Positions 1,076 to 30,600 of a stretch of DNA of 64,000 bases are shown here, one piece after another. The DNA is from Macrostomum lignano (Eukaryota), in contig NIVC01000659.1 in the NCBI GenBank assembly GCA_002269645.1, positions 1 through 64,000 of the forward strand. Reading direction: 5' to 3'. Both the position numbers and the translations under genes were made by a program. The notes beneath the pieces were generated by a model. The model saw only the letters and a program-made list of their open reading frames with translations, ran no database searches and was not told where the DNA came from. Position 1 is the stretch's first letter; the number at the start of each line of letters is the position of its first letter.

Positions 1076-2283
1076 CAAGAGTTACACGCAGACGGTTGCA
1101 GAGGGTGCTTCCAACTCCATAGTCAAGAAGATGTTGAGCGCCCTGGTCGGGAAGCTGGGCTCTGCCTCATATTATATTTTATTCTGTAAACTTCCGTGAG
1201 GGTGGCGGGCCACTTTTTCTATGAAACAGCGTCTGGGCCTTGTTTTTTATCAGTTTTCATTTAAGCGAAAGACTTATTTGACTGGCAATAAATATAAATC
1301 TCGTCTAGAAAGTGGATGGTTATTTCGTAGATAAGTCTGCTTTCCTCTGCGCGTTGTCAAAGAAAGAAGTTGCTTGTCTCAAATTTGGGTTTGTGTGGTT
1401 GCATAGCGCTGACGTCATCATAATATTTATGGCGCTTGTTTTACGAGCTATAGCTGCTTTGTTTAATTCTTCAAGATATTTTTCTGGCGTTTCTCTGAGT
1501 TTAGTTGCTAAGCGTGGCTGCAGAGTCTACCGCTGACAAGAAGAATGCCACAGTCACCTCACTCGCGTCTTGTGTGCACAGAAATTGGTCAGCCAGTGGG
1601 TTGTCATGACGATTGGAAAGCCAAAGAGCCGCTGTACACCCCGTGTGAGCATGGGTATGAGTGCATTCCTGCGTGTACATTATCAAGCAGGCAACAATTG
1701 CAGACCAAAAACCTGCAAACAATTGCTGTCAACACAGTCCAGCACAGGACACAGTGCTTGCTTATATCAATGTAGCATGCAGGTGCAGCATTTACCCACA
1801 GATCAAAGGGGCCGCACTCCAAGTTGAGTATAGGAGCGGCAGTGTGCAATAGTCACCATGCGATACGGGGATTCAGTCAGTTCTCAGAGGGAATTGTCTG
1901 GGGCTGGGTTTAATTCCGTATGGGAAGAATCGATAGGGGACTTGGGTTGCGCATTAACGCTAGTGGAGAAGGCAGTGCCATTGTGTGGCAATCAATGTGC
2001 GGGGTCAGTGTGTGTGTGTGTGTGTGTGTGTGCAGCATAGTATTTCTACTGCCATTCATAAGCTATTTCGGAACTCCAATAGCTCGACTTTACAGGCCAC
2101 AGCTTAAAAAATAGCAAAATGTAATAATGAGATTCATTTGGACTGTTTCTTGAGTCCTAATTTGACAATTAGCCACCTCGGACGCAGTGGCCATAAGGAG
2201 TAGGCATGGCGGCCAACTAATTTAATTTGTCAACTAAACTGGTGAGTGTGAGAACACAACTTAAAAACAAAAAATATAGTCTG

Positions 2284-4469: not shown

Positions 4470-5480
4470 CAACTCAGAGAATCACTCCTAGGGAAGAATG
4501 TCCAACTCGGAGAATCACTCCTAGGGAAGAATGTCCAACTCGGAGAATCACTCCTAGGGAAGAATGTCCAACTCGGAGAATCACTCCTAGGGAAGAATGT
4601 CCAACTCAGAGAATCACTCCTGGGGAAGAATGTCCAACTCAGAGAATCACTCCTAGGGAAGAATGTCCAACTCAGAGAATCACTCCTAGGGAAGAATGTC
4701 CAACTCGGAGAATCACTCCTAGGGAAGAATGTCCAACTCGGAGAATCACTCCTAGGTAAGAATGTCACTCAGAGAATCACTCTAAGTAAACAATGTCACT
4801 CGGAGAATCACTCCTAGGGAAGAATGTCACTCGGAGATTCACTCCTAGGGAAGAATGTCACTCAGAGAATCACTCCTAGAGAAAAATGTCCAACTCGGAG
4901 ATTCACTCCTAGGAAGAATGTCACTCAGAGAATCACTCCTAGAGAAAAATGTCCAACTCGGAGAATCACTCCTAGGAAAGAATGTCACTAAGAGAATCAC
5001 TCCTAGTTAACAATGTCACTCAGAGAATCACTCCTAGTTAACAATGTCACTCGGAGAATCACTCCTAGAGAAAAATGTCCAACTCGGAGAATCACTCCTA
5101 GAGAAAAATGTCCAACTCGGAGAATCACTCCTAGAGAAAAATGTCCAACTCGGAGAATCACTCCTAGAGAAAAATGTCCAACTCGGAGAATCACTCCTAG
5201 AGAAAAATGTCCAACTCGGAGAATCACTCCTAGGGAAGAATGTCACTCAGAGAATCATTCTAAGTAAACAATGTCACTCGGAGAATCACTCCTAGTAAAA
5301 AATGTCACTCGGAGAATCACTCCTAGGGAAGAATGTCACTGGGAGATTCACTCCTAGTGAAGAATGTCACTCAGAGAATCACTCCAAGTAAACAATGTCA
5401 TCAGAGAATCACTCCAAGTAAAAAATGTCACTCGGAGAATCACTCCTAGTAAAAAATGTCACTCGGAGAATCACTCATCG
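4470..5480. repeat. ~33-bp minisatellite (GGAGAATCACTCCTAGGGAAGAATGTCCAACTC)
   Basis: Tandem units; overlapping ORFs show 11-aa periodicity. Confidence 0.95.
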
Positions 5481-5794
5481 CTGCATCAATTCCATTCATT
5501 TTGCATCAACCAATCAGCTGTAGATTATTGAAAAAAAGGATAATATATATTTTAGAGTCCGATTGCACACGACACGGCTGCAGTTGCTATGGTAAGGGAG
5601 CTGTGCATCGAAGCTTTATGCATGGATATATATAAATGTATGTTTATTTGTTAGTCCATATATATATAGTTCAGTGGCGTCGATCTATAAAGTAATTTCG
5701 TATATAGGTGGAGCAATGCCATAAATTCACTGCCCCTCGTGTTAGGCAGATAGCAATAACCAAGTTATAGTTATGATGATGAAGCCAGACTCAC

Positions 5795-6104
5795 CTCCGC
5801 TTGCAGACGCTGTTCCGCAGTCCAGCTGCCCAACCAGGTGCTGGTGACTCGCGTCGCTGGCGACTGCTGCAGCAGTGGAAGCGGCAGCGGTGGCTGCAGT
5901 GACAGCTGGAGCAGCCTTGCCAGACTGTCCAGCAGCTCTGGACAGTGCAGCAGCGGTGGACTTGTTCGTGGCGGAGTTGTGCCGAGTCTCCAGCATCCAT
6001 GGATAGATCGGGTGATGCAGCATTCCAACTCCGCCTCCGTTCTGTTGTCTGACTCCGTGATGCTGGTGATGATGCTGCTGTTGGTGTCCGTGGACATTTG
6101 TCAT
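5795..6104 (-). CDS. Hox3: Hox gene exon with hexapeptide, Hox3-like; homeobox exon not found in the window (probably left of base 1)
   Basis: MTNVHGHQQQHHHQHH...HPIYPWMLETRHNSATNK... with IYPWM at 6008-5994, His/Gln- and Ala-rich tracts and a perfect donor AG|GTGAGT at 5795/5794 (phase 1). PWMLETRHNS resembles vertebrate group-3 IFPWMKESRQNS. At least 65 aa separate the hexapeptide from the intron, and miR-993 lies upstream. No WFQNRR-type sequence was found in 1-5794. The frame is open upstream of ATG 6104, so further 5' coding sequence is possible. Confidence 0.72.
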
Positions 6105-7244
6105 GATGTCTGACTTGGACGCAATAAAACTCGAGACTTTGACGATGAAATGTTCGCAGTTGCAGAATTCGGAGTTGCAGAGCCGCCGCCACTATTTTGG
6201 CAATTAGACCTCTAGAGATTGGGGAGTTTCTCCTCTTCGCCCCAGGGGCTAATGCGGCGGTGGGATCTGTGGGGTGGCGGGCAATGGGGAGGGGAGAGCG
6301 GCGCTTTGGTTGGCTGGGATGTGGAGCCTCTCCGAAATATCCCCTTTCCCTCGCTGCATATGGGTCCAGTCCAGGCTTAGCCAACAACACTCTGTCAGAA
6401 GCGGGCGGCGGCGGCGTGTCCAGAAGAGAAAAAGAGAGAGAGGGAGACAAGGAAAAATAATACGGCTTATTTTTGTCGGGCCGCTTCTAACTGGCCTTTG
6501 ATCTCTGTGCGTGTGTCTGTTGTGTGTGTCTGCATTTCTGATCCGATCTGAGCTTCAGAAGTTTAACTACCGCCAGCCCCAAGCTGCACCACCCGAAGCA
6601 AAGTGGCTGGCGGACCCCCCCCCGCCTCCCCCCCTCTCTCTCCCTATGCGGAAGTAGTAGTTTTTTTCGACTCGGCATTTCTGTAACAGACACCCCGTTG
6701 TGGTGCAATGTTAGATTGTGCGCAACTGCCCCAGCAAGCTGACTGTAGCGGCACTGCTAGATGTAGGTGTCCATCGAACCCATCTTTTTCCGATTGGATG
6801 CTCACAACAGAGGAAGGATGTGCTGGTTGGCTACTGGAAGAGATTAAGAAGTGTTTAGAAGTGTTGCGGAGAGAACATTCGGATCTGCATTCGATGGGGA
6901 GGGGGTTTAGGGACGGCGGAGCGGGGGGAGAGAGAAGGGGAGACTTGGTTGGGGATAACAGCGGGGTTCAGAGGAAGCGGCGGTCCCCCGCTGTTGCGAC
7001 GCCAAAAGCACAAAGTGGCCGCCACTCTTCCAGCTGACTTCGCTTGTCCAAATTATAATGTAATTTTGCATGCATAGCAGCTTTTACATGTAACTGACAA
7101 CTGCAGGATGGGTGAGCCTTTTTTTCCCAATGCCTTGTTCATATCGGGTTTAATTTTGCCTGTGCCTATGACAATCACACCTGTTTTTGTGTCCTCCACT
7201 GTTGAAAAAGGCTTTTGAAGCTGCTATATGAGTCTTGGAGATGA

Positions 7245-8770
7245 CCTGAGTCTTGAATATGACCTCTGAATCTTGAATATGACCGCTGAATCTTGAATAT
7301 GTCCTCTGAGTCTTGAATATGACCTCTGAGTCTTGAATATGACCTCTGAATCTTGAATATGACCTCTGAGTCTTGAATATGATCCCTGAGTCTTGAATAT
7401 GACCTCTGAGTCTTGAATATGACCTCTGAGTCTTGAATATGACCTCTGAGTCTTGAATATGATCCCTGAGTCTTGAATATGACCTCTGAGTCTTGAATAT
7501 GACCTCTGAGTCTTGAATATGACCTCTGAGTCTTGAATATGACCTCTGAGTCTTGAATATGACCTCTGAGTCTTGAATGTGACCTCTGAGTCTTGAATAT
7601 GACCTCTGGGTCTTGAATATGACCTCTGAGTCTTGAATATGACCTCTGAGTCTTGAATATGACCTCTGAGTCTTGAATATGACCTCTGAGTCTTGAATAT
7701 GACCTCTGAGTCTTGAATATGTCCTCTGAGTCTTGAATATGACCTCTGAGTCTTGAATATGACCTCTGAATCTTGAATATGACCTCTGAGTCTTGAATAT
7801 GATCCCTGAGTCTTGAATATGACCTCTGAGTCTTGAATATGACCTCTGAGTCTTGAATATGACCTCTGAGTCTTGAATATGATCCCTGAGTCTTGAATAT
7901 GACCTCTGAGTCTTGAATATGACCTCTGGTCTTGAATATGACCTCTGAGTCTTGAATATGACCTCTGAGTCTTGAATATGACCTCTGAGTCTTGAATATG
8001 ACCTCTGAGTCTTGAATATGACCTCTGAGTCTTGAATATGTCCTCTGAGTCTTGAATATGACCTCTGAGTCTTGAATATGACCTCTGAATCTTGAATATG
8101 ACCTCTGAGTCTTGAATATGATCCCTGAGTCTTGAATATGACCTCTGAGTCTTGAATATGACCTCTGAGTCTTGAATATGATCCCTGAGTCTTGAATGTG
8201 ACCTCTGAGTCTTGAATATGACCTCTGGGTCTTGAATATGACCTCTGAGTCTTGAATATGACCTCTGAGTCTTGAATATGACCTCTGAGTCTTGAATATG
8301 ACCTCTGAGTCTTGAATATGACCTCTGAGTCTTGAATATGTCCTCTGAGTCTTGAATATGACCTCTGAGTCTTGAATATGACCTCTGAATCTTGAATATG
8401 ACCTCTGAGTCTTGAATATGATCCCTGAGTCTTGAATATGACCTCTGAGTCTTGAATATGACCTCTGAGTCTTGAATATGACCTCTGAGTCTTGAATATG
8501 ATCCCTGAGTCTTGAATATGACCTCTGAGTCTTGAATATGACCTCTGAGTCTTGAATATGACCTCTGAGTCTTGAATATGACCTCTGAGTCTTGAATATG
8601 ACCTCTGAGTCTTGAATATGACCTCTGAGTCTTGAATATGACCTCTGAGTCTTGAATATGACCTCTGAGTCTTGAATATGATCCCTGAGTCTTGAATATG
8701 ACCTCTGGGTCTTGAATATGACCTCTGAGTCTTGAATATGACCCCTGAGTCTTGAATATGATCCTTGAGT
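7245..8770. repeat. 20-bp minisatellite (GACCTCTGAGTCTTGAATAT), ~75 copies
   Basis: Highly regular tandem array; explains the spurious 563-aa ORF 7150-8841. Confidence 0.97.
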
Positions 8771-9321
8771 CCTGAATAAGATTTCTGATTATTTAATATT
8801 ATCCTAAACTGAAATCCCCATTTGCAAACAACTAATCCCATAGTTCTAAATTAGAAACCATTTCCTGAAATCAGAACCGTTGCCATATCGTTATACAAAC
8901 TAGCTCGTAAATGAAGCTGCACTCCTTGAGCAAGTTCCTTTGCTTTCCTTTGCTTTACTTGACTTTCACCAAGATTTATAGTTGAATAAAAAGAGGCCAA
9001 GTTGCCCCAACCCCCATGATTCCCCATCAAAGCCTAATTTTTCTGACAAGGCAAAGGTGTCGGAGAGCAACTCTCAGTTCTAGTAGTGGGAAATCTATTT
9101 TGAATTCAAGTGGAAGTGATGGAGGTGTCAGAGCGGCTGAAGTGGTCTGCATTCACGCTCACAGTTCCACTTAAGTAAGTCTGTCTTGACTTCTTCCACG
9201 ACTGACTATAGCGGAGACCTTGCGCAAGGACCTCAGATAACTGGACTGTGGAAGCCAGTGCGGTAAAACAATCGAACCTCTTTATTGAGGTGCGAAATCC
9301 GGATTGGCTTCCAAACCCCTA

Positions 9322-9552
9322 CATTGTGAAGATTGTATAGTTTGTGAATATTGTACAGTTTGTGAAGATTCTATAGTTTGTGAAGATTGTACAGTTTGTG
9401 AAGATTCTATAGTTTGTGAATATTGTACAGTTTGTGAAGATTCTATAGTTTGTGAAGATTGTACAGTTTGTGAGGATTCTATAGTTTGTGAATATTGTAC
9501 AGTTTGTGAAGATTCTATAGTTTGTGAAGATTGTACAGTTTGTGAAGATTCT
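9322..9552. repeat. 18-bp minisatellite with alternating variants (36-bp higher-order unit)
   Basis: AGTTTGTGAAGATTCTAT alternates with AGTTTGTGAA(G/T)ATTGTAC. Confidence 0.92.
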
Positions 9553-10164
9553 CATTTTTGTATTTGGATTTAATTCAAAATATAACTCACATTCGATCCT
9601 GTGCCTTTTAAAACAACCGTTCGGATTGCTATCATATTAGTTTAAGTGACTTACGAGTGACTTGCAACATTCGAAGGACTCTCCAATATTGGAAATTGGC
9701 ATTATTATTGTTATACACGGTGTAAAGTCGCAGTTTGGTTCATTTCCAGATTGTAGATTAGGCCGAACATCCACTATTTAGATCTTTGAGTTCGATAAAT
9801 TTGACCGAGTCGATTCTACAACTCCATGTCAGCTGGGGAGAGCCAACAGATCTTTATCTGAGTGATCGATCAACCCGTGAGTGGATCATCACGGGTCATT
9901 GGCGTGCCAGGCAATGTAGACAGCCAAAACAAGTTCTATTGTTCTACAATACACTGAACAGGGCCGGTTAAAAAAAACAAACTACTGCTTGATTTCGGAT
10001 TCCTAAAAGTGGTTTTTTCCAGACGGAGGTAACGTGAAAAATGTCAATATGGTGATTAACACCTATGGGTATTACGATAAGACATTAATACTCGCTGTTA
10101 CGAACGTGTTTAAATAGCGTGTATATGACGCGTGACTTTGAGCGTCGTACAAAAACCACATTCT

Positions 10165-10530
10165 TCTCACTCTCTCCACTCCGATCCCCTCTCTCTTGTC
10201 CCTCTCTCCCGTCTCTCCCCTACCCTCTATCCTCTCCCGTCTCTCCTCTCCCCTCTCTCCCCTCCCCTCTATCCTCTCCCTCTCTTCTCTCCTCCCCTCT
10301 CCCCTCTCTCCTCTCCCCCTCTCTCTTCTCCCCTCTCTCCCCTCTCCTCTCTCCCCTCTCCTCTCACCTCCCTCCTCTCTTCTCCATTCTCTCCCCTCTC
10401 TCCCCTCTTCTCTCTCCTTACTCCTCTCTCCTCTCTCCTCTCTCCTCTCTCCTCTCTCCTCTCTCCTCTCTCCTCTCTCCTCTCTCCTCTCTCCTCTTTC
10501 CTATATCCTCTCTCCTCTTCTCTCTCGCGA
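10165..10530. repeat. CT-rich polypyrimidine low-complexity tract
   Basis: Almost exclusively C/T, with CTCCTCT motifs. Confidence 0.9.
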
Positions 10531-10789
10531 GTGCATACAGATTAAAGTAAGATTGCGTTTCTGTAAGGTTGAAGAAATATTGGTGTAGGTAAAGTTCGAT
10601 CCAGAATCAGATATTTTCAAATTGAAGAAGCATCAATATAGTAATCGTTTTTAGGCATTTTCGAATGCCTAAAATTTAGCGAACTCATGTCTCGAACGGA
10701 CTGCTACCACAAATTATATACTTTAGATTGCACACAAACGTATAATAAATGTTGCACAGTCTTCACGAAGACTTGGTCCCGCCCAACCA

Positions 10790-10797
10790 ATCAATCA
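10790..10797 (-). promoter_or_regulatory. Pbx/Exd-Hox composite site TGATTGAT (candidate auto/cross-regulatory element)
   Basis: ATCAATCA on the + strand, in a unique non-repetitive island 4.7 kb upstream of the Hox exon. An 8-mer can occur by chance. Confidence 0.3.
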
Positions 10798-11257
10798 TAT
10801 TGTGGACATTCGACCTACTAGTGGCCTCCACAATGGCTTTGAATTGATGGCAGGAGCGTGGCGGGTCAGGACTCAGCGGCAGGGGTGCTGGGGGGCCACG
10901 GATGGCCCAACGGAATTCTGAGCAGATACGCGAATGCGGCAATTATATACCCACTGTATGCTGATCAGGAAATCTCATCCTTCTTCTTCTGCTTCTGCTT
11001 CCGCGGGACGGACGCCGCCAGCCCTACCCACACATTTTCGTTTGGTAATATTTTTATGCAAATCAGACATGGCAATGGGCCTGTTTCATTTGTGCGTGAG
11101 ATTGCACAATACTCAAACTGGATTGGTGTTATGATGGTGGTATATCCATTCTAGCAAACCGCTAATTAGGAACATCTTCCGCAAACATTTTCTTGCAAAG
11201 ATGTCAGCTTACTTTCAGTTTTAAGCTTGTTGAAATTTTTGGGTCATTGTCCTTATT

Positions 11258-11955
11258 AAGGGTCATTCAGGTATTGGGTCATTCAGGTATTGGGTCATTC
11301 AGGTATTGGGTCATTCAGGTATTGGGTCATTCAGGTATTGGGTCATTCAGGTATTGGGGTCATTCAGGTATTGGGGTCATTCAGGTATTGGGGTCATTCA
11401 GGTATTGGGGTCATTCAGGTATTGGGGTCATTCAGGTATTGGGGTCATTCAGGTATTGGGGTCATTCAGGTATTGGGGTCATTCAGGTATTGGGGTCATT
11501 CAGGTATTGGGTCATTCAGGTATTGGGGTCATTCAGGTATTGGGGTCATTCAGGTATTGGGGTCATTCAGGTATTGGGGTCATTCAGGTATTGGGGTCAT
11601 TCAGGTATTGGGGTCATTCAGGTATTGGGGTCATTGAGTCGTTGGAGTCATTCAGGTATTGGGGTCATTCAGGTATTGGGATGATTCAGGTATTGGGGCC
11701 ATTCAGGTATTGGGTCATTCAGGTATTGGGGTCATTCAAGTATTGGGGTCATTCAGAGTATTGGGGCCATTGAGTCATTGAGGTCATTGGGGCATTGAGG
11801 TCATTTAGGTATTGGAGTTATTTAGGTAGTGGGGTCATTCGGGTATTGGGTCATTCAGGCATTGGGTCATTCAGGTATTGGAGTCATTGAGTCATTGGGG
11901 TCATTTAGGTATTGGGGTCATTTAGGTATTGGGGTCATTCAGATATTGGGGTCAT
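11258..11955. repeat. 17/18-bp minisatellite (GTCATTCAGGTATTGGG[G])
   Basis: Tandem array that degenerates towards its right end. Confidence 0.95.
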
Positions 11956-12219
11956 TGAGAACTTTTTGGAATTAGGAAACAATTAATTACTGCCACTGTT
12001 CTCTTTTCACAGTTCACAGACATGAAATGCGGAGATTGTTATCAAACTTCCAATCCGAAATAAATTGGGCTCTGAATTCACGCATGCAAAACTTGATAAT
12101 GGTTATTAAGTCATAAATCACTGCTCAATTCGGTGAGTAGATCTTTCGAGCTCGAACTGGATTCGTGGCGTTGCGACATGAATAATCTCAGATCTGAGTA
12201 GAAGCAACTATGATGATGC

Positions 12220-12880
<661 letters not shown>

Positions 12881-13136
12881 GCTCTCGCAGATTGGTACTT
12901 CTGCTTCTGCAAAGCAGACCCTCAAGCCTGCATCCCGCAGTTGCCAAGGAGGCATGCCAGTAAGCATCGGGATCGGATGGGTTCCGTCTCTTCCTTGCGT
13001 CTTCGCAGACCCTTCCTTCACAGCAGCAGCATATAAGGGAAGCTGGTCTCTAGCCTATAGATTAGAGACCTGTAAGGGATGGGCAGGCAGATAAAATATT
13101 TTATAATTTATGGCCCTATAGATGGGCCTCTTTCCA

Positions 13137-13137
13137 G

Positions 13138-13193
<56 letters not shown>

Positions 13194-13420
13194 CATGGCA
13201 ATGTGGCCATTCAAATCTCAAGAGGTAAGAGAGAGGGGGAGACAGAGGAGAGAGGGGAGACAGAGGAGAGAGGGGAGACAGAGGAGAGAGGGGGAGACAG
13301 AGGAGAGAGGGGAGACAGAGGAGAGAGGGGAGACAGAGGAGAGAGGGAAACAGAGGGAGACAAAGAAAAGAGGGAGATAGAGGTGAGAGAGATAGAGAGA
13401 GAGAGAGAGACAGAGGGAGA
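13137..13420. repeat. (GCCT)n microsatellite followed by a GA-rich tract
   Basis: Directly visible. Confidence 0.9.
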
Positions 13421-14156
13421 CATGGGAGAGTTGGGGAGGGGCAACCAAATTTGTTGCCAGACTTCGCCTCCAATCCAGATTTCAAGCTTGAAGAGTCCAT
13501 GGCATGGGCGCTACACTTTCTAGCAATGTCGTATTGATGATGGCTTCGGCTCTGGGCTAGAAGAAAACTGGTATCTCAGAGATATAAAAGGAGAAAACTG
13601 TTGCTGCCATGGGGGCCTTCGACTAATGCAATAATCAATCTTTGGGGGGGGGGGGAGGCTGCTGCTGCTGTGGCATCGGCGGCAGCTTTGAAGGCAGGAA
13701 TATTTATCTGTAGGGAGAGAAGGGCAGGGGGAGCCAAGGTGTAAGGAACTCCGGAACAATCAAGCCAAGGCCAAATGGCAAGTCTTTTCATCATTTGTGG
13801 CGACTTGTAAGACAAAGAGCGAGAGAGGTGCATATAGGGTTACCATGGAGCCGCATTGGACTAATTTATCAAGTTAATCAAATTTGTAAGCAATTAATTA
13901 TTATCAATAGGACTATTGCGCTGAAGATTTGACAGTCAACATATTCAATGGAGCATTCCGCATAGGTCCTCGTGATGCTTGACTTGACCGGCCTTAGTGA
14001 CGAGGCTCTTGCTGATGCTGCGGGGCAATTAGTGATATCCTGTTTCCAACGGCTGGTTGCGTGCGTGATAATGACCAGTGAAGTCGTGACGAAGTCAAAC
14101 TGACTGCATGTCTGCCATTCCATCGCACAGATTCGCTCTGATTCACGCCACTAGTT

Positions 14157-14560
14157 CTTCGGGTCTGAAGGTGTCACTTCGGGTCTGAGGGTGTCACTTC
14201 GGGTCTGAGGGTGTCACTTTGGGTCTGAGGGTGTCACTTCGGGTCTGAGGGTGTCACTTCGGGTGTGAGGGTGTCACTTCGGGTCTGAGGGTGTCACTTT
14301 GGGTCTGAGGGTGTCACTTCGGGTCTGAGGGTGTCACTTCGGGTCTGAGGGTGTCACTTCGGGTCTGAGGGTGTCACTTCGGATCTGAGGGTGTCACTTC
14401 GGATCTGAGGGTGTCACTTCGGGTCTGAGGGTGTCACTTCGGGTCTGAGGGTGTCACTTCGGGTCTGAGGGTGTCACTTCGGATCTGAGGGTGTCACTTC
14501 GGGTCTGAGGGTGTCACTTCGGGTCTGAGGGTGTCACTTCGGGTCTGAGGGTGTCATTTA
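14157..14560. repeat. 20-bp minisatellite (TTCGGGTCTGAGGGTGTCAC), ~20 copies
   Basis: Regular tandem array. Confidence 0.96.
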
Positions 14561-15363
14561 AAATATTAGGGTGCCCCTTCAAATCTGAGTGGTGCCATTT
14601 CAAATCTGAGTGGTGCCGTTTCAAATGTCAGTTTTTGTCGTGTTTAAACTTGAAGCCACAAAGTAAGCCCCATATACTATTAAAATTGTTCAATATAAGG
14701 TTCGGAGAGTACATGTATATACTGAGCGCAAGTGATGTCGCTTACCATTATATAATGGCCTGACTTGTGACTCTGAAGCCTTCCGGAAAAAAGGATGTAC
14801 AGCAAAAAGTGTATAAATAGATCTTTTTATAAACCAGCTGAAATTATACTATACTACTGGGTTCGCACTGTCGGCATTTTGCCTTTGATCTTTTGATCGT
14901 TCAAAGGGTTAGTTAGAATTGGTGATTTTTAATAATAGCCTCTGCAGTATCAGCCTGCCGCCGCCGATCCTGCTCAAAATGATAACGACTTCCACCCCTT
15001 TATCTGAGCAGCCGCTGTGGAGGGGTTGGGTTTAGTTGAAAGATTTACAACTCCATATATTATAAAATGATGAATGCTGGGCTAGTCAGGTCATTTATCT
15101 TTCAACCCTCGCTGCGACTGAGACAGCCAATGAGGCTTGCTGGCGGCATTGATTAAATAACAAAAAACTTCAAACTTCCCGAGAACTAAGGAAGGTCCTC
15201 AGCGAGCTTGAGACAATTGATTTCATGGGGCTTTTTGGGCGATTTATTTATTCCTCTCTGCTTTCCGAGATTTTGTCTAATCGTGTCCTAACTATGCTAC
15301 TGATTGCAGTAGCAATGCAGAAATTTGACCTTAATTATGTTTTAAGTGCAGAATTGCATAAAT

Positions 15364-15625
15364 CAGAGGTCGACAAAATTTTTAAGGAGAAAGAAGAGGC
15401 GAAGGAATAATTTGAACAAAGTACAAGAGAGGAGGCGAGAGGAGAGGAGAAATGAAATTGGAGATGAGAGAGGAGAGAAGAGAATAGAGAGGATATTAGA
15501 CAGAAGAGACCTGAGAAGAGACCTTGAGCGGACCGGATTGCTATTGTGAAGTTTCAAAGGACCCGAGGGTCATATAGAGAGGCTTCGCGGGCCGCGTGTT
15601 GGCCCTCGAAGTTTGCCAACCTCTG
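15364..15625. mobile_element. Possible hAT-type MITE remnant; internal part shared with ~2520-2590
   Basis: Left end CAGAGGTCGACAAAA; right end GTTTGCCAACCTCTG (reverse complement CAGAGGTTGGCAAAC). Shares GGATTGCTATTGTGAAGTTTCAAAGGACCCGAGGG with the 2.5-kb region. No clean 8-bp target-site duplication. Confidence 0.5.
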
Positions 15626-15859
15626 TCTGAATGCTGGTTTTAGAGATACAGTGAGTTTCTGTTCTATATAGAAAATATTTTTGAGTTCACTGGCATCCCA
15701 AGGCGGCCAGTCAAAGATGGAAAAGATGGCGTGGTGCCAGGGTGCCCACAACCCAACTAAAAATATTAATTAATTTATTATAAATATATATGACCCGGAA
15801 ATGCGGCTCTAATGAAGTAAAACAGCCGTTTGCGCACAAAAAAGACTGGAAGAAATTTG

Positions 15860-16355
15860 TACAACACAATTATCATAACACAAAACAATTACAACACAGC
15901 ACAGAAATGCCACAACACAACACAGAGATACAACAACACAACACATAAATACAACAACACAACACCTAAATACAACAACACAGAGATACAACAACACAAC
16001 ACCTAAATACAACAACACAACACAGAAATACAACAACACAACACAGAAATACAACAACACAACACATAAATACAACAACACAACACATAAATACAACAAC
16101 ACAACACATAAATACAACAACACAACACAGAAATACAACAACACAACACATAAATACAACAACACAACACATAAATACAACAACACAACACATAAATACA
16201 ACAACACAACACAGAGATACAACAACACAACACATAAATACAACAACACAACACAGAAAAACAACACAGAGATACAACAACACAACACATAAATACAACA
16301 ACACAACACAGAAAAACAACAGATATACAACAACACAACACCTAAATACAACACA
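15860..16355. repeat. CA-rich ~21-bp minisatellite (AAATACAACAACACAACACAT)
   Basis: Tandem array; source of the spurious Cys/Val-rich ORFs. Confidence 0.93.
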
Positions 16356-17280
16356 AAAACAACTGAAATAGCCTTCCGTTCAGTTCCAGACTACTATTTA
16401 GCACTCCACGATCTGAACAGTTTCAGTTCATAAGACAATTTTTATGTGACCCCTCACCGGCGCAGAGGGGGCGGCAACTCTCTCAGAACAGAACAACATT
16501 AAAAAGTTTGACCGCGGCGGCTCTGCGTGGTCGGTCGGGTTGGGGGGGCTGGGACTCGGCGGCTTCTCTCTCTGATCTTTTTTCTAAGAGCCATGCATAA
16601 CAGCAGCCACTGACTCAGCCGGGCCCGCAGTGGTCAGCCACCCCCTCCCCGCCGGCACCAAACCAGCCACGGGGGGGGGTTTGGGGGGTTGGGGGGGGGC
16701 AGTGGCCTGTTTCAGCGCGCCCCACAGCAGGTCGTAAAACCGAGAAAGCATCGATGGCCCGCCGCCAGTCAGGCAGCCAAGCCAAGTGCGTCCCACCACC
16801 CCACCCACACCAATTTTAACAACCTTTTCGCTGCGCCCAGGCCCAGCTTATATTATATGAGCTGCAAAGGCTAGCTGAGAGAGAGAGAGAGAGCTGGGAC
16901 GGGAGGAGGAGAAACGGCCTGCCTGACTTACTGCCGAACAACTCCTAGGGTGCATGATACTGATAGGTATTGACTGTGGTGTTTATTAAGAAAGAAAATT
17001 GATTTCTTCTTGGTTTAGAAGGTTGAAAACAAACTACTGCAAACACGTGCATTAATCAAAGCCTCGTTGTCTGTCAGCTACGAGCTACAGCTACAGCCCA
17101 GGTACCAGTACCACCGTGGACAGGTAAGTTGAGGCCATAACATTGTCATCGTCATGTCAACTCAAATTAGCTAACCTAACGAGTTTTATTTTTTTTAATA
17201 ATTGACCTCCGCCTCCAACAAAAGCAGTCATTATTGTGTCCTGTACATGCGAGCTGCTGACGCTGACGCTGACGCCTGAA

Positions 17281-17345
17281 TGGGCAGACCCGGAGACTAA
17301 TTCGGTTATTGATTGCTCAGAAGCTCGTTTCTACAGGTGCGCAGA
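17281..17345 (+). ncRNA. mir-993: miR-993 precursor (miR-10 superfamily, Hox-cluster microRNA); mature 3p about 17320-17341
   Basis: GAAGCTCGTTTCTACAGGT at 17320-17338 matches the conserved miR-993-3p (GAAGCUCGU(C/U)UCUACAGGUAUCU, from memory) over 19 nt including the seed. The upstream arm gives an imperfect stem by hand (GGAGAC with GTTTCT; TGGGCA..CC with GGTGCGCA). Confidence 0.85.
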
Positions 17346-18024
17346 CTGTGTTATTCAGCCGAGGACAGGTCCAGGTGTAACCTTTGCCCCTTTTACCCGC
17401 AGCCTTTGTTACCTGTGATACTATTGACGTATTGAGTGCCGGATCTCCCCACTATATATTTTTAATTCTACTCAAAATGTTAAAATTGATGTCGTGAGAC
17501 TTAGTCGACAATTGACATTCGTTAACACAAGCGTACTTTAAAAAGGCCAAAGCTTAAATCTACGCAAAAATTACATCCTGACAAGTTACCTTTTCCAGCT
17601 AGTCCTCCCGAATAAATTTAGCGAACATACCCCGCTATTTTTCCAAACCTAAAATATCATAAATATAAATTGAAAGAGTTTCCAATTCCATGCCATTCAA
17701 ACTTCCAATCAATTACGCTTGCATTATTGGCCTACGATTTCACAGATATTAGATTCTTAGAATAACTACTAGCAATCTAGTGCGGCCCCCCTTCGGGGCG
17801 CCCAATAAGCACGGAGCAAAAATAGTTAATGGAAAACAATTAAAAAAGCACATTTTCTTAAACACCAATTCCTTCTTAACTTTTAAAAATCACCTTATTC
17901 ATGTAAAATTGTCACGGACAATGATATTTGCTATGAATCTATTTTTTTCTAAAATTAACAAATATACAACAAAATATAACTTTCACAAAGATAACAGACA
18001 TTACCCCTAAATAGAAAATATTCC

Positions 18025-18650
18025 CAAGACAGCAAGCATCCCTCCAGATAGCAAGCACCCCCTCCAAAAGTAAGCAACCGCAGATAGCAAGCATCCCCTA
18101 ATACTCGTAGCAAGCATCCACCCAGATAGCGAGCATCCTGCAGACAGCAAGCATTTCCCAAATATTGTAGAATCATCCACCCAGATAGCAAGCATCTGCA
18201 GATAACAAGCATCCCCCAAATATTGTAGAAGCATCCACCCAGATAGCAAGCATCCCCCAAATATTGTAGAAGCATCCACCCAGATAGCAAGCATCTGCAG
18301 ATAGCAAGCATCCACCCAGACAGCAAGCATTTCCCAAATATTGTAGAAGCATCCACCCAAATAGCAAGCATCTGCAGATAACAAGCATCCCCCAAATATT
18401 GTAGAAGCATCCAGCTAGATAGCAAGCATCCCCCAAATATTGTAGAAGCATCCACCCAGACAGCAAGCATCCCCCAGATAGCAAGCATCCACCCAGACAG
18501 CAAGCATCCTGCAGATACCAAGCACCCCCCAGATATTGTAGAAGCATCCACCCAGACAGCAAGCATCTCCCAGATAGCAAGCATCCACCCAGACAGCAAG
18601 CATCCTGCAGATACCAAGCACCACCCAAATATTGCAGAAGCATCAACCCA
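18025..18650. repeat. Degenerate minisatellite (CAGATAGCAAGCATCC[A/C]CC)
   Basis: Tandem variants, inside the Helitron. Confidence 0.9.
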
Positions 18651-18699
18651 GTTAGTAAGAATCCATAAAAAGCAAACATCCCTAGATAGAAAGAATCCC

Positions 18700-20470
18700 A
18701 TACATATAGCCAAGCTTATCAAGCGCAGTAATCCTTTGTTTGCCAAGCGCAGTAATCATTGGTTTATCAAGTGCAGTAATCCTTGGCTTATCAAGTGAAG
18801 TAAGTTCTGGTCTATCAAGTGCAGTAATCCTTGGTTTATCAAGTGCAGTAAGTCTTGGTTTATCAAGTGCAGTAAGTCTTGGTCTATCAAGTGCAGAAAT
18901 CCTTGGTTTATCAAGTGCAGAAATCCTTGGTTTATAAAGTGCCGTAAGTCTTGGTTTATCCAATGCAGTAGTCCTTGGTTTATCAAGTGCAATAATCCTT
19001 GGTTAATCAAGTGCAGTAATCCTTGGTTTATCAAGTGCAGTAATCCTTGGTTTATCAAGTGCAGTAATCCTTGGTTTATCAAGTGCAGAAATCCTTGGCT
19101 TATCAAGTGCAGTAATCCTTGGTTTATCAAGTGCAGTAACCCTTTGTTTATCAAGCGCAGTAGTCCTTGGTTTATCAAGTGCAGTAATCCTTGGCTTATC
19201 GAGTGCAATAATCCTTGGCTTATCAAGTGCAATAATCCTTGGTTTATCAAGTGCAATAATCCTTGGTTTATCAAGCGCAGTAATCTTTGGCTTATCAAGT
19301 GCAATAATCCTTGGTTTATCAAGTGCAGTAATCCTTGGCCTATCAAGTGCAATAATCCTTGGTTTATCAAGCGCAGTAATCCTTGGCTTATCGAGTGCAA
19401 TAATCCTTGGCTTAGCAAGTGCAATAATCCTTGGTTTATCGAGTGCAGTAATCCTTGGCTTATCAAGTGCAGTAATCCTTGGTTTATCAAGTGCAGTAAG
19501 TCTTGGTTAATCTAGTGCAGTAATCCTTGGTTTATCAAGTGCAGTAACCCTTTGTTTATCAAGCGCAGTAGTCCTTGGCTTATCGAGTGCAATAATCCTT
19601 GGCTTATCAAGTGCAATAATCCTTGGTTTATCAAGTGCAATAATCCTTGGTTTATCAAACGCAGTAATCTTTGGCTTATCGAGTGCAATAATCCTTGGCT
19701 TATCAAGTGCAATAATCCTTGGTTTATCAAGTGCAATAATCCTTGGTTTATCAAGCGCAGTAATCTTTGGCTTATCAAGTGCAATAATCCTTGGTTTATC
19801 AAGTGCAGTAATCCTTGGCCTATCAAGTGCAATAATCCTTGGTTTATCAAGCGCAGTAATCCTTGGCTTATCGAGTGCAATAATCCTTGGCTTATCGAGT
19901 GCAATAATCCTTGGCTTATCCAGTGCAATAATCCTTGGTTTATCAAGTACAAAAATCCTTGGCTTATCAAGTGCAATAATCCTTGGTTTATCAAGTACAA
20001 TAATCCTTGGCTTATCAAGTGCAATAATCCTTGGTTTATCAAGTGCAATAATCCTTGGTTTATCAAGCGCAGTAATCTTTGGCTTATCGAGTGCAATAAT
20101 CCTTGGCTTATCAAGTGCAATAATCCTTGGTTTATCAAGTGCAATAATCCTTGGTTTATCAAGCGCAGTAATCTTTGGCTTATCAAGTGCAATAATCCTT
20201 GGTTTATCAAGTGCAGTAATCCTTGGCCTATCAAGTGCAATAATCCTTGGTTTATCAAGCGCAGTAATCCTTGGCTTATCGAGTGCAATAATCCTTGGCT
20301 TAGCAAGTGCAATAATCCTTGGTTTATCAAGTGCAGTAATCCTTGGCCTATCAAGTGCAATAATCCTTGGTTTATCAAGCGCAGTAATCCTTGGCTTATC
20401 GAGTGCAATAATCCTTGGCTTATCCAGTGCAGTAATCCTTGGTTTATCAAGTACAATAATCCTTGGCTTC
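18700..20470. repeat. 24-bp minisatellite (TATCAAGTGCAGTAATCCTTGGTT), ~70 copies
   Basis: Tandem array; source of the INQGLLHL-repeat ORFs. Confidence 0.97.
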
Positions 20471-24629: not shown

Positions 24630-27600
24630 CGAGGCCAACTCCTCCTCTGGAGGAGAAAGGGGAAGAATTCCCATCACCGGAACTCCATTCCCTGAAATGC
24701 CATTCCATGAAACCCATCATCCAACTCCTCTCCGCGAAACTGAACATCATCGAAATCCTCTCCGTAAAAGAGAACTCCATCAAACACCTCTCCGTGAAAC
24801 TGACATTCATCAAAATCCCCTCCGAGAAATAGAAATCCTCTCCGTGAAACTGGACTCCATGGAAATCCTCTCCGTGAAACTGACATCCATCAAAATCGTC
24901 TCCGCGAAACAGAAATTCTCTCCATTAAACTGGACTGAATCGAAATTTTCTCCGTAAAAAAGAATCAACTCTCAGGATTTAGTGGTTAGGGTTAGGGTTA
25001 GGGTTAGGGTTAGAGCTACAACGCAGCAGCGTGTTGAACCAATTGAATTAATTGAATGCGCAACCGATTTCACAGTCAGTCAGTATCAGTCTCGGTAAAA
25101 GTTAACAAAAAGATTGCGCAAACTAAATCAACCCTCCAATACACAGCGACTGACCCCCTTCCAATACGCAGTGGCAATTAAAAGTTGAACCCCCCCTCCC
25201 ACCAACTGTTGGGGGGTTGGTCGAACCCCCATTGAACTCCAAAATGAGTACACTGCCGAAAGTTAAAAGTATGGAAATCGTTTTTTAAATGCTGTGCTTT
25301 TTGTTTTCACATTTAAAGCAAACAACTTATATCCCCGAACTCAGTATTGCAAGATCTTTCCAGTAATATAAGTCTCTCCTCTGAAAGTTTAAAACTCGAG
25401 GAACAGTTAGCGCTTGAAATTTCCTGATTTAAAGCATTAAAGTATCGAGTGTACGTTCACAGCCTGCTAAAGAGGCTCGCAAGTTTATTCATTAAATTTT
25501 ACTGCCCAGCAAATACACATGGCTGCCTATTGAATGCCGCCGATAATAAAACCAATTAAATCTCGACACAGTCCTAGCTATCTCCTTACACTGTACAACT
25601 GCTATGTACACTCAGCCCAAGCCCAACCCCCCATTCCGGGGGAATCGTTAAATTTAATTGAACCCCCCAACACGCGGGGGTTTTGCATTTAACGCAGAAC
25701 ACGCGCACCCACCCCCCAAAACACAGCGACCCGCGGGCGGAGGTTGGGGTGGCTATTTTTACAAACAGACTGCAACCCCTCCACTGGAGAGGCAGAGTGG
25801 CCACAGAAGGGCCAAAGAAGGTTAGGAAATCAGTTTTCTGCTTTTTTAGGGATCTTAAAATGTAAAAATGAAAGATTAAAATTGCTATAAACCCAGTCCG
25901 GAAAATTTGCAGTTTACCCATATAAGTTTCAACGCTGACTTTCCAGTAGTTTAGGAGAAAAGTTGCAACATACGGACAAACAAACAAACATCGCACCAGT
26001 TTTAGTATTAACGAGGCCAACTCCTCCTTCGGAGAAGAAAGGGGAAGAACTCCAATCAGCGGAATTCCATTCCCTGAACTCCATCAGCGGAATCCCATTT
26101 TCCAACACCTCTCCGCGCAACAGAAATCGTCTCCGTGAAACTGAACACTATCGAAATCCTCTCCGTGAAACTGAACACCATCGAAATATTCTCCGCGAAA
26201 TAGAAATCCTCTCCGTGAAACTGGACTAAATCGAAATTTCTACGTCAAACAGCCCAGCTCTCAGAATTCATTGGTTAAGGTTAGGGTTAGGGTTAGAGCT
26301 ACACACAGCTGCGTGTTGAAAGACGCCGTAAAAACATTGAACCAATTAAATTGCGCAACTTATTTCTCAGGCAGTCAGTATCAGCCTCAGTTAAAGTTAA
26401 CAAAAAGATTGCGCAATCTAAATCAACCCTCAAATACACAGCAACCGACCCCCCTTCCAATACGCAGTGCAGCTAGAAATTGAACCCCCCCTCACCAACT
26501 ATTGGGGGGTCGGTCGAACCCCCATTGAACTCCAAAATGAGCAAAATCTTTGCAGAAAGCTAAAAGTATGAAAATCTTTTCTTGAATGCTGTGAATTTAA
26601 TTTTCATATTTAAAGCAAAAAACTTATATCCCCGAACTCATCGCAGCAAGATCTTTCCAGCAATATAAGTCTCTCCTCTCTAAGTTCAAAACTCGAGCAA
26701 CAGTTAGTGTTTGAAACTTTCTGATTTTAAGCATTGAAATATCGAGTGTACGTTCACTGCCTGCTAAAGATGCTCGCAAGTTTATGCATTAAAATGCACT
26801 GAATTTCACTGTGCAAAAAATACACAGGGCTTCCTGTTAAAAAACAGAACACAAATAGTTGCGCAATTGTCTATAAAGTCAGCCAGTGAGCCAGGGTCCA
26901 ATTGTACACACGCCGCCAATGAGAACGCGCCCATTCCCCCACAGGAGAGAAAATGCACTGGCGACATAGGAAAAAGTTGTGGCGTAATCACTCAAAATTT
27001 ATGCCAATTTTCAGCTCCGAGCAGAAAGAGGGGACAATTAAGATTATCAAAGGTCAAGACCGCCGTTTTCTGCTTTTTTAGGGATCTTAAAAATTGAAAA
27101 TGAAAGATTAAAATAGCCTAAAGCCATCCTCGGAAAATTTGCAGTTTTCCCATATAAGTTTCAACGCTGAGTTGCAAGTATTCTGGGAGGAGTTATGCAA
27201 CAAACGGACAAACAGACAAACAGACAAACATCGCACCACTTTTAGTATTAACGAGGCCAACTCCTCCTTCGGAGAAGAAAGGGGAAGAACTCCAATCAGC
27301 GGAATTCCATTCCCTGAACTCCATCAGCGGAATCCCATTTTCCAACACCTCTCCGCGCAACAGAAATCGTCTCCGTGAAACTGAACACTATCGAAATCCT
27401 CTCCGTGAAACTGAACACCATCGAAATATTCTCCGCGAAATAGAAATCCTCTCCGTGAAACTGGACTAAATCGAAATTTCTCCGTCAAACAGCCCAGCTC
27501 TCAGAATTCATTGGTTAGGGTTAGGGTTAGGGTTAGAGCTACACACAGCTGCGTGTTGAAAGGCGCCGTAAAAACATTGAACCAATTAAATTGCGCAACT

Positions 27601-30600
27601 TATTTCTCAGGCAGTCAGTATCAGCGTCGGTTAAAGTTAACAAAAAGATTGCGCAATCTAAATCAGCCCTCCAATACACAGCAACCGACCCCCTTCCAAT
27701 ACGCAGTGCAGCTAGAAATTGAACCCCCCCTACTAACTATTGGGGGGGGGGTCGGTCGAACCCCCATTGAACTCCAAAATGAGCACAATCTTTGCAGAAA
27801 GCTAAAAGTATGAAAATCTTTTCTTGAATGCTGTGAATTTAATTTTCATATTTAAAGCAAAAAACTTATATCCCCGAACTCATCGCAGCAAGATCTTTCC
27901 AGCAATATAAGTCTCTCCTCTCTAAGTTCAAAACTCGAGCAACAGTTAGTGTTTGAAACTTTCTGATTTTAAGCATTGAAATATCGAGTGTACGTTCACT
28001 GCCTGCTAAAGATGCTCGCAAGTTTATGCGTAAAAATGCACTGAATTTCACTGTGCAAAAAATACACAGGGCTGCCTGTTAAAAAACAGAACACAAATAG
28101 TTGCGCAATTGTCTATAAAGTCAGCCAGTGAGCCAGGGTCCGATTGTACACACGCCGCCAATGAGAACGCGCCCATTCCCCCACAGGAGAGAAAATGCAC
28201 TGGCGACATAGGAAAAAGTTGTGGCGTAATCACTCAAAATTTATGCCAATTTTCAGCTCCGAGCAGAAAAAGTGTCCAGAGAAGGTTAGGAAATCAGATT
28301 TCTGCTTTTTTAGGGATCTTAAAATTAAAAAATGAAAGATTAAAACAGCCTAAAGCCGATTCCGGAAAATTTGCAGTATTCCCATATAAGTTTCAACGCT
28401 GAGTTGCACGTAGTCTAGGAGGAGATATCCTACAAACAAACAGACAAACAAACAAACAAACAACGCACCAACTTTAGTATTAAGACGAGTGGAACTCCTC
28501 CTTCGGAGGAGAAAGGGGAAAAACTCCCATCACTGGAATTCTATTCCCTGAAATATCCATCAACTGAAATTCCATGTCTTTAACCCTATCTTTCAAATCG
28601 TCTCCAAATTCTTTACAAAATCTTTCAAAGACCATAGCTCAAAGACTCTCAAGTCTCTCATATCTCCTCTCTCCTCTCTCTCATCTCATCTCTACCCCTG
28701 CTCCCTTATTTATCTCTTCTCCCTCGTCTTTCGTCTGTACCTTCTCCTGTCTTCTGTCTCCTCTCTTCACTCTTATCTCTCCCTCTTCTCTCCTCTCTCA
28801 TATGTCATCTCTCCTTACTTATCTATCGTCTCTCTTAACCCTCTCTCTCTTCTCTTTTCTCTCCTATCTGCTTCTCATTTCTCATATCTCATATACGCTC
28901 TCACACTCTACTTTCTTGTCTCCCATCTTTCTTTCCTCCTTACCACTATCCCCTGTCTCTTCTCTTCTCTCTTTTCTATCCTCTCCATTCTCTTATCTCT
29001 CCTCTCCTCACTACTTTCCTTCTCTTAACTCTCTTATCTCTGATCTTTCATCTCTTTCCTCTCTCCTCTCTCTCTCTCTTCTCCTCTCGCTTCTCTCTCT
29101 TCTCTCTCGCCTCTCATCTATACTACCTTATTTATATTTTCTCCCTGGTCTTTCGTCTCTACTCTCTCCTGTCTCATTTCTCCCCTCTTTCTCCTCTCTT
29201 CTCTCTCCCCTCCTCTCTCATCTCTCATCCCTTATCTCACTCCTTCTTTCTCCTCTACTCTCCCCTCTTTTCTATTACCTCTGTACGCTCTTATCCCTCA
29301 TCTCTATTCTCTCTCCTATCATCTCTCTTGTCTCCCTCTGCTATCTCATATCTCTCCTCTCGTCTCCTCTCTTCTCTTCTCTTCTCTCTCCTTCGTTCCC
29401 GCCTTACTCACCTCTTCTCTCCCATCTGTCATGTCTAATCTCTCGTCTCATTTCTACTCTGTTTTCTACCATCTCATCTCATCTCTCTTCTCTTTTCATT
29501 CTTCTCTTTACTCTCTTCTCTGACTGATTGAAGATGCCAAATCTATCAAGATCTTCTCCGCGAAGCAGAAATCCTGTCCGTGCAACTGAAAACCATCGAA
29601 ATCCTCTCCGTGAAACTGGACTCCTTCGAAATCCTCTCCGTGAAACTGGACTCCTTCGAAATCCTCTCCGTGAAACTGGACTCCTTCGAAATCCTCTCCG
29701 TGAAACTGGACTCCTTCGAAATCCTCTCCGTGAAACTGGACTCCTTCGAAATCCTCTCCTTGAAACTTAAATCCATCAAAATCGTCTCCATAAAGCAGAA
29801 ATCAATCATTAATTATCTCCGCGAAACAGAAATCCTCTCCGTGAGGCTGAACATCATCAAAATCCTCTCCGTGAAACTGAACACCATCGAAATCCTCTCC
29901 ACGAAACAGAAATCCTCTCCGTCAAAATTAAAACATTGAAATCGTCTCCGCTAAACTGTACTCAATCGAATTTTTTCCGTCAAACAACTCAACTCTCCGG
30001 ATTCATTGGTTAGGGTTAGGGTTAGGGTTAGAACTACGCACAGCTTCGTGTTAAAAGGCACAGATAAAAATATTGAACTAATTGAATCAATTCATTGCGC
30101 AACCGATTTCACAGTCAGTCAGTATCAGCCTCAGGTAAAGTTAACAAAAACATTGCGCAATCTAAATCAACCCTCCAATACACAGCAGCAGTGAGAAGTT
30201 GAACCCTCCCCCCAACAATCTTTGCAGATTAAAGTACAATCTTTGCAGAAAGTTAAAAGTATGGAAATAGTTTTTCAAATGCTGTGCTTTTTCTTTTCAT
30301 ATTTAAAGCAAACAACTTATATCCCCGAACTCAGCGTTGCAAGATCTTGCCAGCAATATAAGTTTCTCCTCTCAAAGTTTAAAACTCGAGGAACAGTTAG
30401 CGTTTGAAACTGTCTGATTTATAGCATTGAAGTATCGAGTGTACGTTCACTGCCTGCTTGCAAGTTGATGCATTGAATTTCAATGTCCAACAAATACACA
30501 GGACTGCCCATTGAAAGGCAGGAAAACTTATCAGTAGCCATATCATTGCGCAATTATCTATAAAGTCAGCCAGTGAGCCAGGGTCCAAGTGTACACACGC

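Follow-up and report, generated by a model that had tools for sequence, protein, structure and literature searches.

A Hox3-type exon next to a miR-993-type hairpin in the flatworm Macrostomum lignano: a probable remnant of Hox-cluster microsynteny

The microRNA (miRNA) miR-993 typically lies between Hox3 and Dfd in arthropods (Pace et al. 2016), and under its MirGeneDB name, Mir-10-P4, it is located between the same two genes in a sea spider (sea spider genome 2025). More widely, the literature assigns it to protostome Hox clusters, with reports from those of Capitella, Lottia and nematodes, and in annelids the 3p arm of Mir-10-P4 is the one that is used. Flatworm Hox genes are usually described as dispersed, and a literature search, with MirGeneDB outside its reach, found no paper linking miR-993/Mir-10-P4 to flatworms or to a flatworm Hox gene. 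Here, we analyze 64,000 nucleotides (nt) of the flatworm Macrostomum lignano (GenBank assembly GCA_002269645.1, contig NIVC01000659.1, positions 1 to 64,000 of the forward strand), a stretch referred to below as the window. It carries a Hox3-type exon on the minus strand and a miR-993-type hairpin on the plus strand; the hairpin lies on the 5' side of the Hox3-type gene, 11.2 kb away, and points away from the gene. We consider it likely, with a probability of about 0.72, that the window holds exon 1 of a second Hox group-3 gene together with the flatworm orthologue of miR-993, a surviving piece of Hox-cluster microsynteny, since the two are positioned as in the ancestral protostome cluster, with miR-993 on the 5' side of Hox3.

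The features on the side of the Hox3-type gene are listed below (a slash marks an exon-intron border here and throughout).

5795-6104, minus strand: coding part of exon 1 of the Hox3-type gene (ATG at 6104-6102; 103 codons plus 1 nt; read directly)
5973-6008, minus strand: hexapeptide with group-3-type flank, IYPWMLETRHNS (by comparison with other Hox proteins)
5789-5794, minus strand: splice donor GTGAGT, intron phase 1 (sequence read directly)
1095-1160, minus strand: intronic segment with the translation AQLPDQGAQHLLDYGVGSTLCN, followed by a phase-1 C/GT donor (exact 22-residue match to UniProt A0A1I8FWG9)

The open reading frame (ORF) 6104-5795 (-) is intact over 310 nt, from the ATG through to G/GTGAGT, and this exon length gives a phase-1 intron; both the frame and the encoded peptide, MTNVHGHQQQHHHQHHGVRQQNGGGVGMLHHPIYPWMLETRHNSATNKS...DCGTASASG(G), were read directly from the sequence. 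Six-frame translation of the whole window yields a single YPWM, at 6005-5994 (-), in agreement with the earlier note on this DNA, which had pointed to a YPWM exon on the minus strand; by our own estimate, a bare YPWM would occur by chance in ~7% of windows of equal size. The same note had expected the group-3 residues PWMKESRQN after the hexapeptide. The flank is indeed of the group-3 type, but its actual residues differ from KESRQN: IYPWM is followed by LETRHNS, which has the group-3 form x-E-[ST]-R-[QH]-N-[ST]. Against (K)E[ST]RQN[ST], the flank retains E, R, N and S, has conservative replacements of S by T and of Q by H, and carries L instead of K, at a position occupied by M in M. lignano Hox3 and by V in sea urchin. 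Other group-3 flanks in the comparison set are IYPWMKESRQNS in Priapulus Hox3, IFPWMKESRQNT in HoxA3, IYPWMVESRQNT in sea urchin and IYPWMMETRGHS in M. lignano Hox3. The flanks of other groups read YPWMKKIHV in Hox4, YPWMRKLHI in Hox5 and FPWMKEKKS in Hox2, and the window flank matches none of these forms. This set consists of proteins retrieved by a database search with MLig_HOX3, whose matches outside Macrostomum are mostly Hox3 proteins.

MLig_HOX3 itself is a transcript-derived protein containing ...NPMTGVQRNSQQHRAGMHQQHQQMLHGGLPHPIYPWMMETRGHS... (MLig_HOX3_RNA1310_15265.1; Currie et al. 2016, PMC4815179, Supplementary file 1). Pairwise BLASTP aligns the exon-1 peptide with this protein at 22/43 identical residues (E=4e-8), and both have the start MT.V and the motif HPIYPWM[LM]ETR. 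The same two features, followed by a linker of ~60 residues, characterize the window gene and M. lignano Hox3 as represented by MLig_HOX3, the annotated gene BOX15_Mlig019909g2 (here paralogue B) and A0A1I8FWG9, and a further likeness is a phase-1 intron just before the homeodomain, with a length of at least ~5.7 kb. In paralogue B, exon 1 ends with G/GTAAGT in phase 1 and is followed by a 5.7 kb intron and the acceptor CAG/AC just before the homeodomain. The donor at 5795 equals that of paralogue B in phase and relative position, with the same two-exon structure in which the intron separates hexapeptide and homeodomain. Hence the view of the exon as Hox3-type is borne out by the shared start, the HPIYPWM[LM]ETR motif, the phase-1 intron and the group-3 flank, and its paralogy to M. 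lignano Hox3 and its intron phase are direct observations.

Apart from repeats, the BOX15_Mlig019909g2 locus shows no nucleotide similarity to the window. Judged from sequence, the window exon is exon 1 of an older, so far unannotated second M. lignano Hox3-type paralogue and neither an allele nor a product of the recent genome duplication: it is older because only 22/43 residues are identical in the alignable part and the two loci share no nucleotide similarity, and unannotated because the exon-1 peptide has no match among 5.8 billion protein sequences.

Two Hox3-type homeodomains exist in M. lignano, type A with ...MKFKKDQKVRDTELQ and type B with ...ELANSLSLSERQ...MKYKKDQKLVREQ, identical to each other at 56/61 positions. 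Both match Priapulus Hox3 and HoxA3 at 54-55/61 positions, compared to 43-47/61 for Hox2, Hox4 and Hox5; for the type-A homeodomain of A0A1I8FWG9, the values are 55/61 with Priapulus Hox3 and 44-46/61 with Hox2, Hox4 and Hox5. In A0A1I8FWG9 the type-A homeobox exon occurs twice, in identical form, with a 23-residue spacer in between, the first 22 residues of which are encoded by intronic DNA of the window: AQLPDQGAQHLLDYGVGSTLCN is placed between the two homeobox exons and joined through a phase-1 junction. No second copy of this segment, 1160-1095 (-), was found in 113 kb comprising the window, the BOX15_Mlig019909g2 locus and a retrieved segment of GenBank contig NIVC01000024.1. Because the window segment 1160-1095 is fused with a Hox3-type homeobox exon in A0A1I8FWG9, the type-A homeobox is probably situated just left of the window and would be the true partner of the donor at 5795. 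The double homeobox of A0A1I8FWG9 reflects either a tandem duplication or an assembly or annotation artefact of the older M. lignano assembly. In the published transcript, the N-terminus and the first half of the homeodomain of MLig_HOX3_RNA1310_15265.1 correspond to paralogue B and the second half and the C-terminus to type A, a pattern which suggests a chimeric de novo assembly of the two paralogues.

The window runs colinear with the contig NIVC01000024.1, with 93-98% of nucleotides identical, and probably represents a different haplotype, a copy that arose in the genome duplication, or a different assembly.

The sequence GAAGCTCGTTTCTACAGGT occurs without a mismatch on the plus strand, at 17320-17338; it is on the strand opposite to exon 1 and 11,216 nt upstream from the exon-1 ATG, just as the earlier note had described it (a 19-nt miR-993-3p match on the plus strand, 11.2 kb 5' of the exon). 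It is the sole site of the window at <=3 mismatches. A chance origin of the 19-mer is rejected, with 0.02 sites expected from shuffled sequences even when 3 mismatches are allowed. The reference sequences of miR-993 were taken from published papers, and 15 arthropod hairpins were taken from Pace et al. 2016, Supplementary file 5. Positions 17320-17338 are the first 19 nt (19/19) of Parhyale/Daphnia mir-993 (GAAGCTCGTTTCTACAGGTATCT) and of Dermatophagoides miR-993a-3p (GAAGCUCGUUUCUACAGGUUUC); the Bombyx reference is GAAGCUCGUCUCUACAGGUAUCU. The preceding UCAG at 17316-17319, invariant in 14/15 arthropod hairpins, extends the match to 23 nt. The pattern of the mature Mir-10-P4 3p, GAAGCUCGU.UCUACAGGU.. 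with the seed AAGCUCG, is also found at 17320-17338. The hairpin predicted around this site has the following parts.

17225-17350, plus strand: predicted pri/pre-miRNA hairpin of miR-993 (Mir-10-P4) type, basal stem included (-46.4 kcal/mol, z=-2.84, 1/200 shuffles as good)
17237-17259, plus strand: predicted 5p arm, UGUCCUGUACAUGCGAGCUGCUG, in the miR-10 family register (from the covariance-model alignment and the pairing table)
17261-17315, plus strand: long terminal loop, into which (GCTGAC)x3 at 17256-17273 extends
17320-17341, plus strand: predicted mature 3p, GAAGCUCGUUUCUACAGGUGCG, seed AAGCUCG, with the first 19 nt of arthropod miR-993-3p

In this fold, 17235-17262 pairs with 17316-17343, with energies of -42 to -46.4 kcal/mol, z values of -2.6 to -2.8 and 1-2/200 shuffles equally good, and a basal stem of 5 bp is formed by 17225-17229 and 17346-17350. 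The predicted 3p has 17/22 nt paired in the minimum-energy fold, and the plus strand folds better than the minus strand (-42 versus -32.5 kcal/mol). The predicted 5p arm, UGUCCUGUACAUGCGAGCUGCUG, is identical to the arthropod 5p consensus UACCCUGUAGAUCCGGGCUUUUG at ~16/23 positions by our count. The hairpin that the earlier note had drawn at 17281-17345 does not hold, since it folds no better than shuffles (z=+0.76) and the true 5' arm is at 17237-17259. More generally, spans starting at 17255 or later fold no better than shuffled sequences and were rejected as hairpins, the 5' arm being further upstream.

A covariance model was built from the 15 arthropod mir-993 hairpins and searched against 113 kb, namely the window, the paralogue B locus and the NIVC01000024.1 segment. 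Its best match is 17220-17345 (+), at 21.9 bits and E=0.0013, over the full length of the model (positions 1-86), with 56 nt inserted in the loop compared to 13 in the consensus. Of the consensus pairs, 15/17 are kept. Facing an unchanged 3p, the 5p side has two substitutions, G to A and U to C, that replace G:U wobbles by Watson-Crick pairs, as would be expected were selection to act on the 3p product; such selection of the 3p has been reported for Mir-10-P4. When the Macrostomum hairpin was aligned with those of arthropods by MAFFT, the arthropod 5p fell on a loop segment; the structure-aware covariance alignment was preferred. Within the loop, GGGCAGACCCGGAGAC at 17283-17298 (+) is roughly similar to the 5p arm of arthropods (..CUGUAGAUCCGGGCU..) and is unpaired with the 3p; the similarity may have arisen by chance, or the segment may be what is left of an older arm. 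Sequence, fold and the arthropod family model all uphold the miR-993 identity proposed in the earlier note, and these three are observations made on the window itself.

The window hairpin is like arthropod, annelid and nematode miR-993 (dpu-mir-993, isc-mir-993, dme-mir-993 MI0005854) in the first 19 nt of the 3p and the preceding UCAG, in a miR-10-like 5p arm in the same register, and in its position on the 5' side of Hox3. The long terminal loop is shared with Drosophila and Anopheles mir-993, the precursors of which measure 113-115 nt and have long loops (Pace et al. 2016). Long loops are known elsewhere as well, with 54 nt in cel-mir-229 and 99 nt in dme-mir-989; flatworm hairpins are larger, and long-looped invertebrate miRNAs are processed. 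Differences from known miR-993 are the 3p tail, GCG(C) instead of AUCU or UUC, the 5p seed region, UGUCCUG instead of UACCCUG, the 56-nt loop with its hexamer repeat, and the flatworm host.

The contig NIVC01000024.1 carries the same hairpin (18454-18579 of the retrieved segment) with one substitution, in the loop. The unique flanks of the two hairpin copies differ by ~3.7%, from which we estimate that ~4.6 differences would be predicted in the hairpin (P ~0.06). This two-copy comparison is only suggestive of selection on the hairpin.

As the earlier note had stated, miR-993 lies 5' of Hox3, between Hox3 and Dfd, in arthropods, and the hairpin too is found on the 5' side of the Hox3-type exon. 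The window resembles the arthropod order Hox3 - miR-993 - Dfd (Pace et al. 2016; sea spider genome 2025) in having the microRNA immediately 5' of Hox3. Unlike in the arthropod order, its far side has no Hox4, and only the gene-microRNA pair is retained. The window is not an intact cluster, having this one Hox exon and no other in the 58 kb upstream of it. Hence the retained Hox-cluster fragment envisaged in the earlier note comes down to one gene-microRNA pair, with no second Hox gene in the window. The coordinate order in Table S1 of Pace et al. 2016 was rejected as a record of strand because it is unreliable, and it does not settle the orientation of arthropod miR-993.

Published data include M. 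lignano small RNAs 100% identical to miRBase miR-993, at 6-103 reads per million (rpm) and with no locus given (Zhou et al. 2015, PMC4604429, Supplementary Table 2). Across five libraries, the values of miR-993 are 26.9, 6.2, 103.1, 7.95 and 34.3 rpm; miR-993a-3p amounts to about half of the miR-993 value in every library, and miR-993-3p reaches <=1.2 rpm in all of them (Zhou et al. 2015, PMC4604429). The miR-993-3p entry of the table is taken to be the fly type, with C at position 10. In this table, the irradiated library is contaminated with vertebrate sequences and that of regeneration day 3 with fly sequences. However, the level of miR-993 peaks in a library with zero fly-specific miRNAs, and vertebrates have no miR-993, so the M. 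lignano reads are endogenous. These reads may stem from the window hairpin.

These elements would work in a familiar manner, and we propose no new mechanism; what is new is that a Mir-10-P4 locus in a flatworm and a further Hox3 paralogue of M. lignano, its second, are still neighbours. Exon 6104-5795 (-) would encode the N-terminal arm, the PBX/Exd-contacting hexapeptide and the linker, and would be joined by phase-1 splicing, over an intron of >5.8 kb, to a homeobox exon outside the window, close to its left end. The element at 17225-17350 (+) would be the flatworm orthologue of the protostome Hox-cluster miR-993 (Mir-10-P4), and its primary transcript would fold into a stem of ~24 paired bases with a 56-nt terminal loop. 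By analogy with the family elsewhere, Drosha and Dicer would cut the hairpin, the 3p strand GAAGCUCGUUUCUACAGGUG.. (seed AAGCUCG) would enter Argonaute, and the loaded 3p would repress mRNAs with CGAGCUU sites. Of these parts, we infer the homeobox, the processing from the window locus and the targets. Two CGAGCTT 7-mers, the complement of the miR-993-3p seed, are present in the paralogue B locus at 19236 and 20140 of the retrieved segment, 2.3 and 3.2 kb downstream of the stop codon. This count, 2 compared to 0.22 expected in 4 kb, is exploratory only.

Several observations weigh against the reading of the window as a Hox3 exon and a miR-993 orthologue preserved in microsynteny. No Hox4 or other homeobox is found in the 47 kb beyond the hairpin, six-frame translation shows no WFQNRR homeobox motif anywhere in the window, and the predicted assignment of the window gene to group 3 relies on exon 1 and on an indirect link via a flawed gene model. 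Unlike the locus of the window gene, that of BOX15_Mlig019909g2 has no miR-993 within 10 kb on either side, by site search and covariance model. Rfam gives nothing at gathering scores across the window and no mir-10 match at E<=10 in 16500-18200. The window is rich in repeats, and in a positional null an upstream partner equal in stability to that of the 3p exists for 5.3% of its random 22-mers. The loop is long, at 56 nt, and contains a short tandem repeat. The two genomic copies of the hairpin (~96% alike) are too similar to prove selection. Finally, another locus could supply the published miR-993 reads, since the table demanded 100% identity to miRBase and the predicted 3p departs from every reference after nt 19.

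Some of this evidence could be read as the decay of a miR-993 relic, unprocessed through loop expansion and arm mismatches, with the reads coming from another locus. The loop with (GCTGAC)x3, two mismatches in the consensus stem, the diverged 3' tail and the absence of an Rfam match would fit such a relic, and the published reads are identical to miRBase entries ending in ..GGUAUCU or ..GGUUUC, compared to ..GGUGCG here. We nevertheless think it unlikely, for an unbroken run of 23 nt (UCAG and the 19-mer) has stayed the same as in arthropods over >500 million years, and such identity is difficult to account for unless selection continues; pairing is maintained or strengthened by the changes in the 5p; and fly and mosquito mir-993 have comparably long loops, in keeping with the processing of long-looped miRNAs in invertebrates. 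The constant ratio of miR-993 to miR-993a-3p counts would, in our view, fit reads with a shared prefix, such as the 19-mer. There is still less reason to prefer the minus strand, in the direction of the Hox gene, as the functional transcript, giving a miR-10-like 5p, (C)ACCUGUAGAAACGAGCUUCUG, or to assume that both strands act, as in iab-4/iab-8. Sense and antisense Hox microRNAs are known, the minus strand folds too (-32.5 to -36.4 kcal/mol, z=-1.9), and the same covariance model matches it at 17337-17240 (-) with 18.9 bits and E=0.009. But the plus strand has the better score and an advantage of ~10 kcal/mol in stability, and three of its G:U pairs turn into A/C mismatches on the minus strand. 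In addition, the sequence matched exactly is the miR-993 3p, which is the arm that dominates in Mir-10-P4, and the published reads carry the names miR-993 and miR-993a-3p. These points make a minus-strand product improbable. Most improbable of all, by a small step, is that the YPWM exon comes from a gene copy that is no longer alive, or from a homeobox gene of some group other than 3, and is like Hox3 in no part but the hexapeptide region. In favour of this, the window has no homeobox, the exon is absent from all protein databases searched, and beyond the 43 aligned residues it is of low complexity and unalignable. Against this, exon 1 has an intact ORF with its start codon and a consensus phase-1 donor, all in agreement with paralogue B; the motif in the flank is a group-3-specific one; and A0A1I8FWG9 connects window DNA from downstream of the exon with a homeobox of Hox3 type.

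On the favoured reading, of a group-3 gene and miR-993 surviving side by side, the Mir-10-P4/miR-993 family would be extended to a genomic locus in Platyhelminthes, and a conserved microRNA beside its ancestral Hox neighbour in an early-branching flatworm would be a fixed landmark for reconstructing how the cluster broke up. That the pair has been held together by functional constraint rather than by chance survival is a doubtful further suggestion. Such constraint could come from a regulatory region shared by the divergent units or from miR-993 acting on the mRNAs of the Hox3 paralogue or of other Hox genes. If so, the pair would have stayed linked where the rest of the cluster was broken, and only one copy would have kept the microRNA after the duplication of Hox3. 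M. lignano is open to transgenesis and RNA interference, so that a possible action of this microRNA on Hox genes can be put to the test in a flatworm.

Upstream of the exon, over 58 kb, there are satellites and a Helitron, genes for C-type lectins and for an EF-hand protein, and an orphan secreted-protein gene; the list that follows covers the satellite arrays of the whole window.

34464-38572, minus strand: Helitron-like element with overlapping ORFs in different frames; C-terminal part of a Pif1-type helicase (Pfam Pif1_2B, E=2e-14)
48922-50916, minus strand: single-exon orphan gene of 622-664 residues; the N-terminus resembles a signal peptide, and an internal duplication gives two similar modules in the C-terminal part
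51394-52164, minus strand, and 47118-47573, plus strand: C-type lectin gene and its partial inverted copy around the orphan gene, both ending in ...YNSKLRACRLLLFTDAQVEAEIET.ADWVKFSV
about 61619-62699, plus strand: exons of an EF-hand (calmodulin-like) gene (Pfam EF-hand_7, E=6e-14)
266-1074, 4472-5476, 7229-8778, 11260-11956, 12240-12880, 14157-14556, 15891-16353 and 18141-20466: satellite arrays in the left part of the window
54868-55336, 56506-57585, 58035-58528 and 60683-61466: satellite arrays in the right part

The ORF of the orphan gene, 48925-50790 (-), is 98% identical over 622 residues to BOX15_Mlig000053g1 of Macrostomum lignano, consistent with the flatworm host that the earlier note had considered; its protein has no Pfam family and no relative at E<=0.001 besides this M. 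lignano protein itself. The coding region of the Helitron seems to be split by frameshifts. Dispersed duplicated blocks with 79-94% identity flank this element, one pair being 25812-28677 and 41480-43271 and the other 40560-41823 and 44490-45755. The mini- and microsatellite arrays are unusually dense, with periods of 4, 17, 20, 21, 24, 33, 96 and 176, and occupy a large share of both the Hox3 intron and the 11-kb interval from exon to hairpin. The ~29 kb of satellites, duplicated blocks and Helitron at 17660-46480 correspond to ~3.4 kb in NIVC01000024.1 (14751-18138 of the retrieved segment); either haplotypes or duplicated genome copies differ here by a large structural change, or one of the assemblies has collapsed the region.

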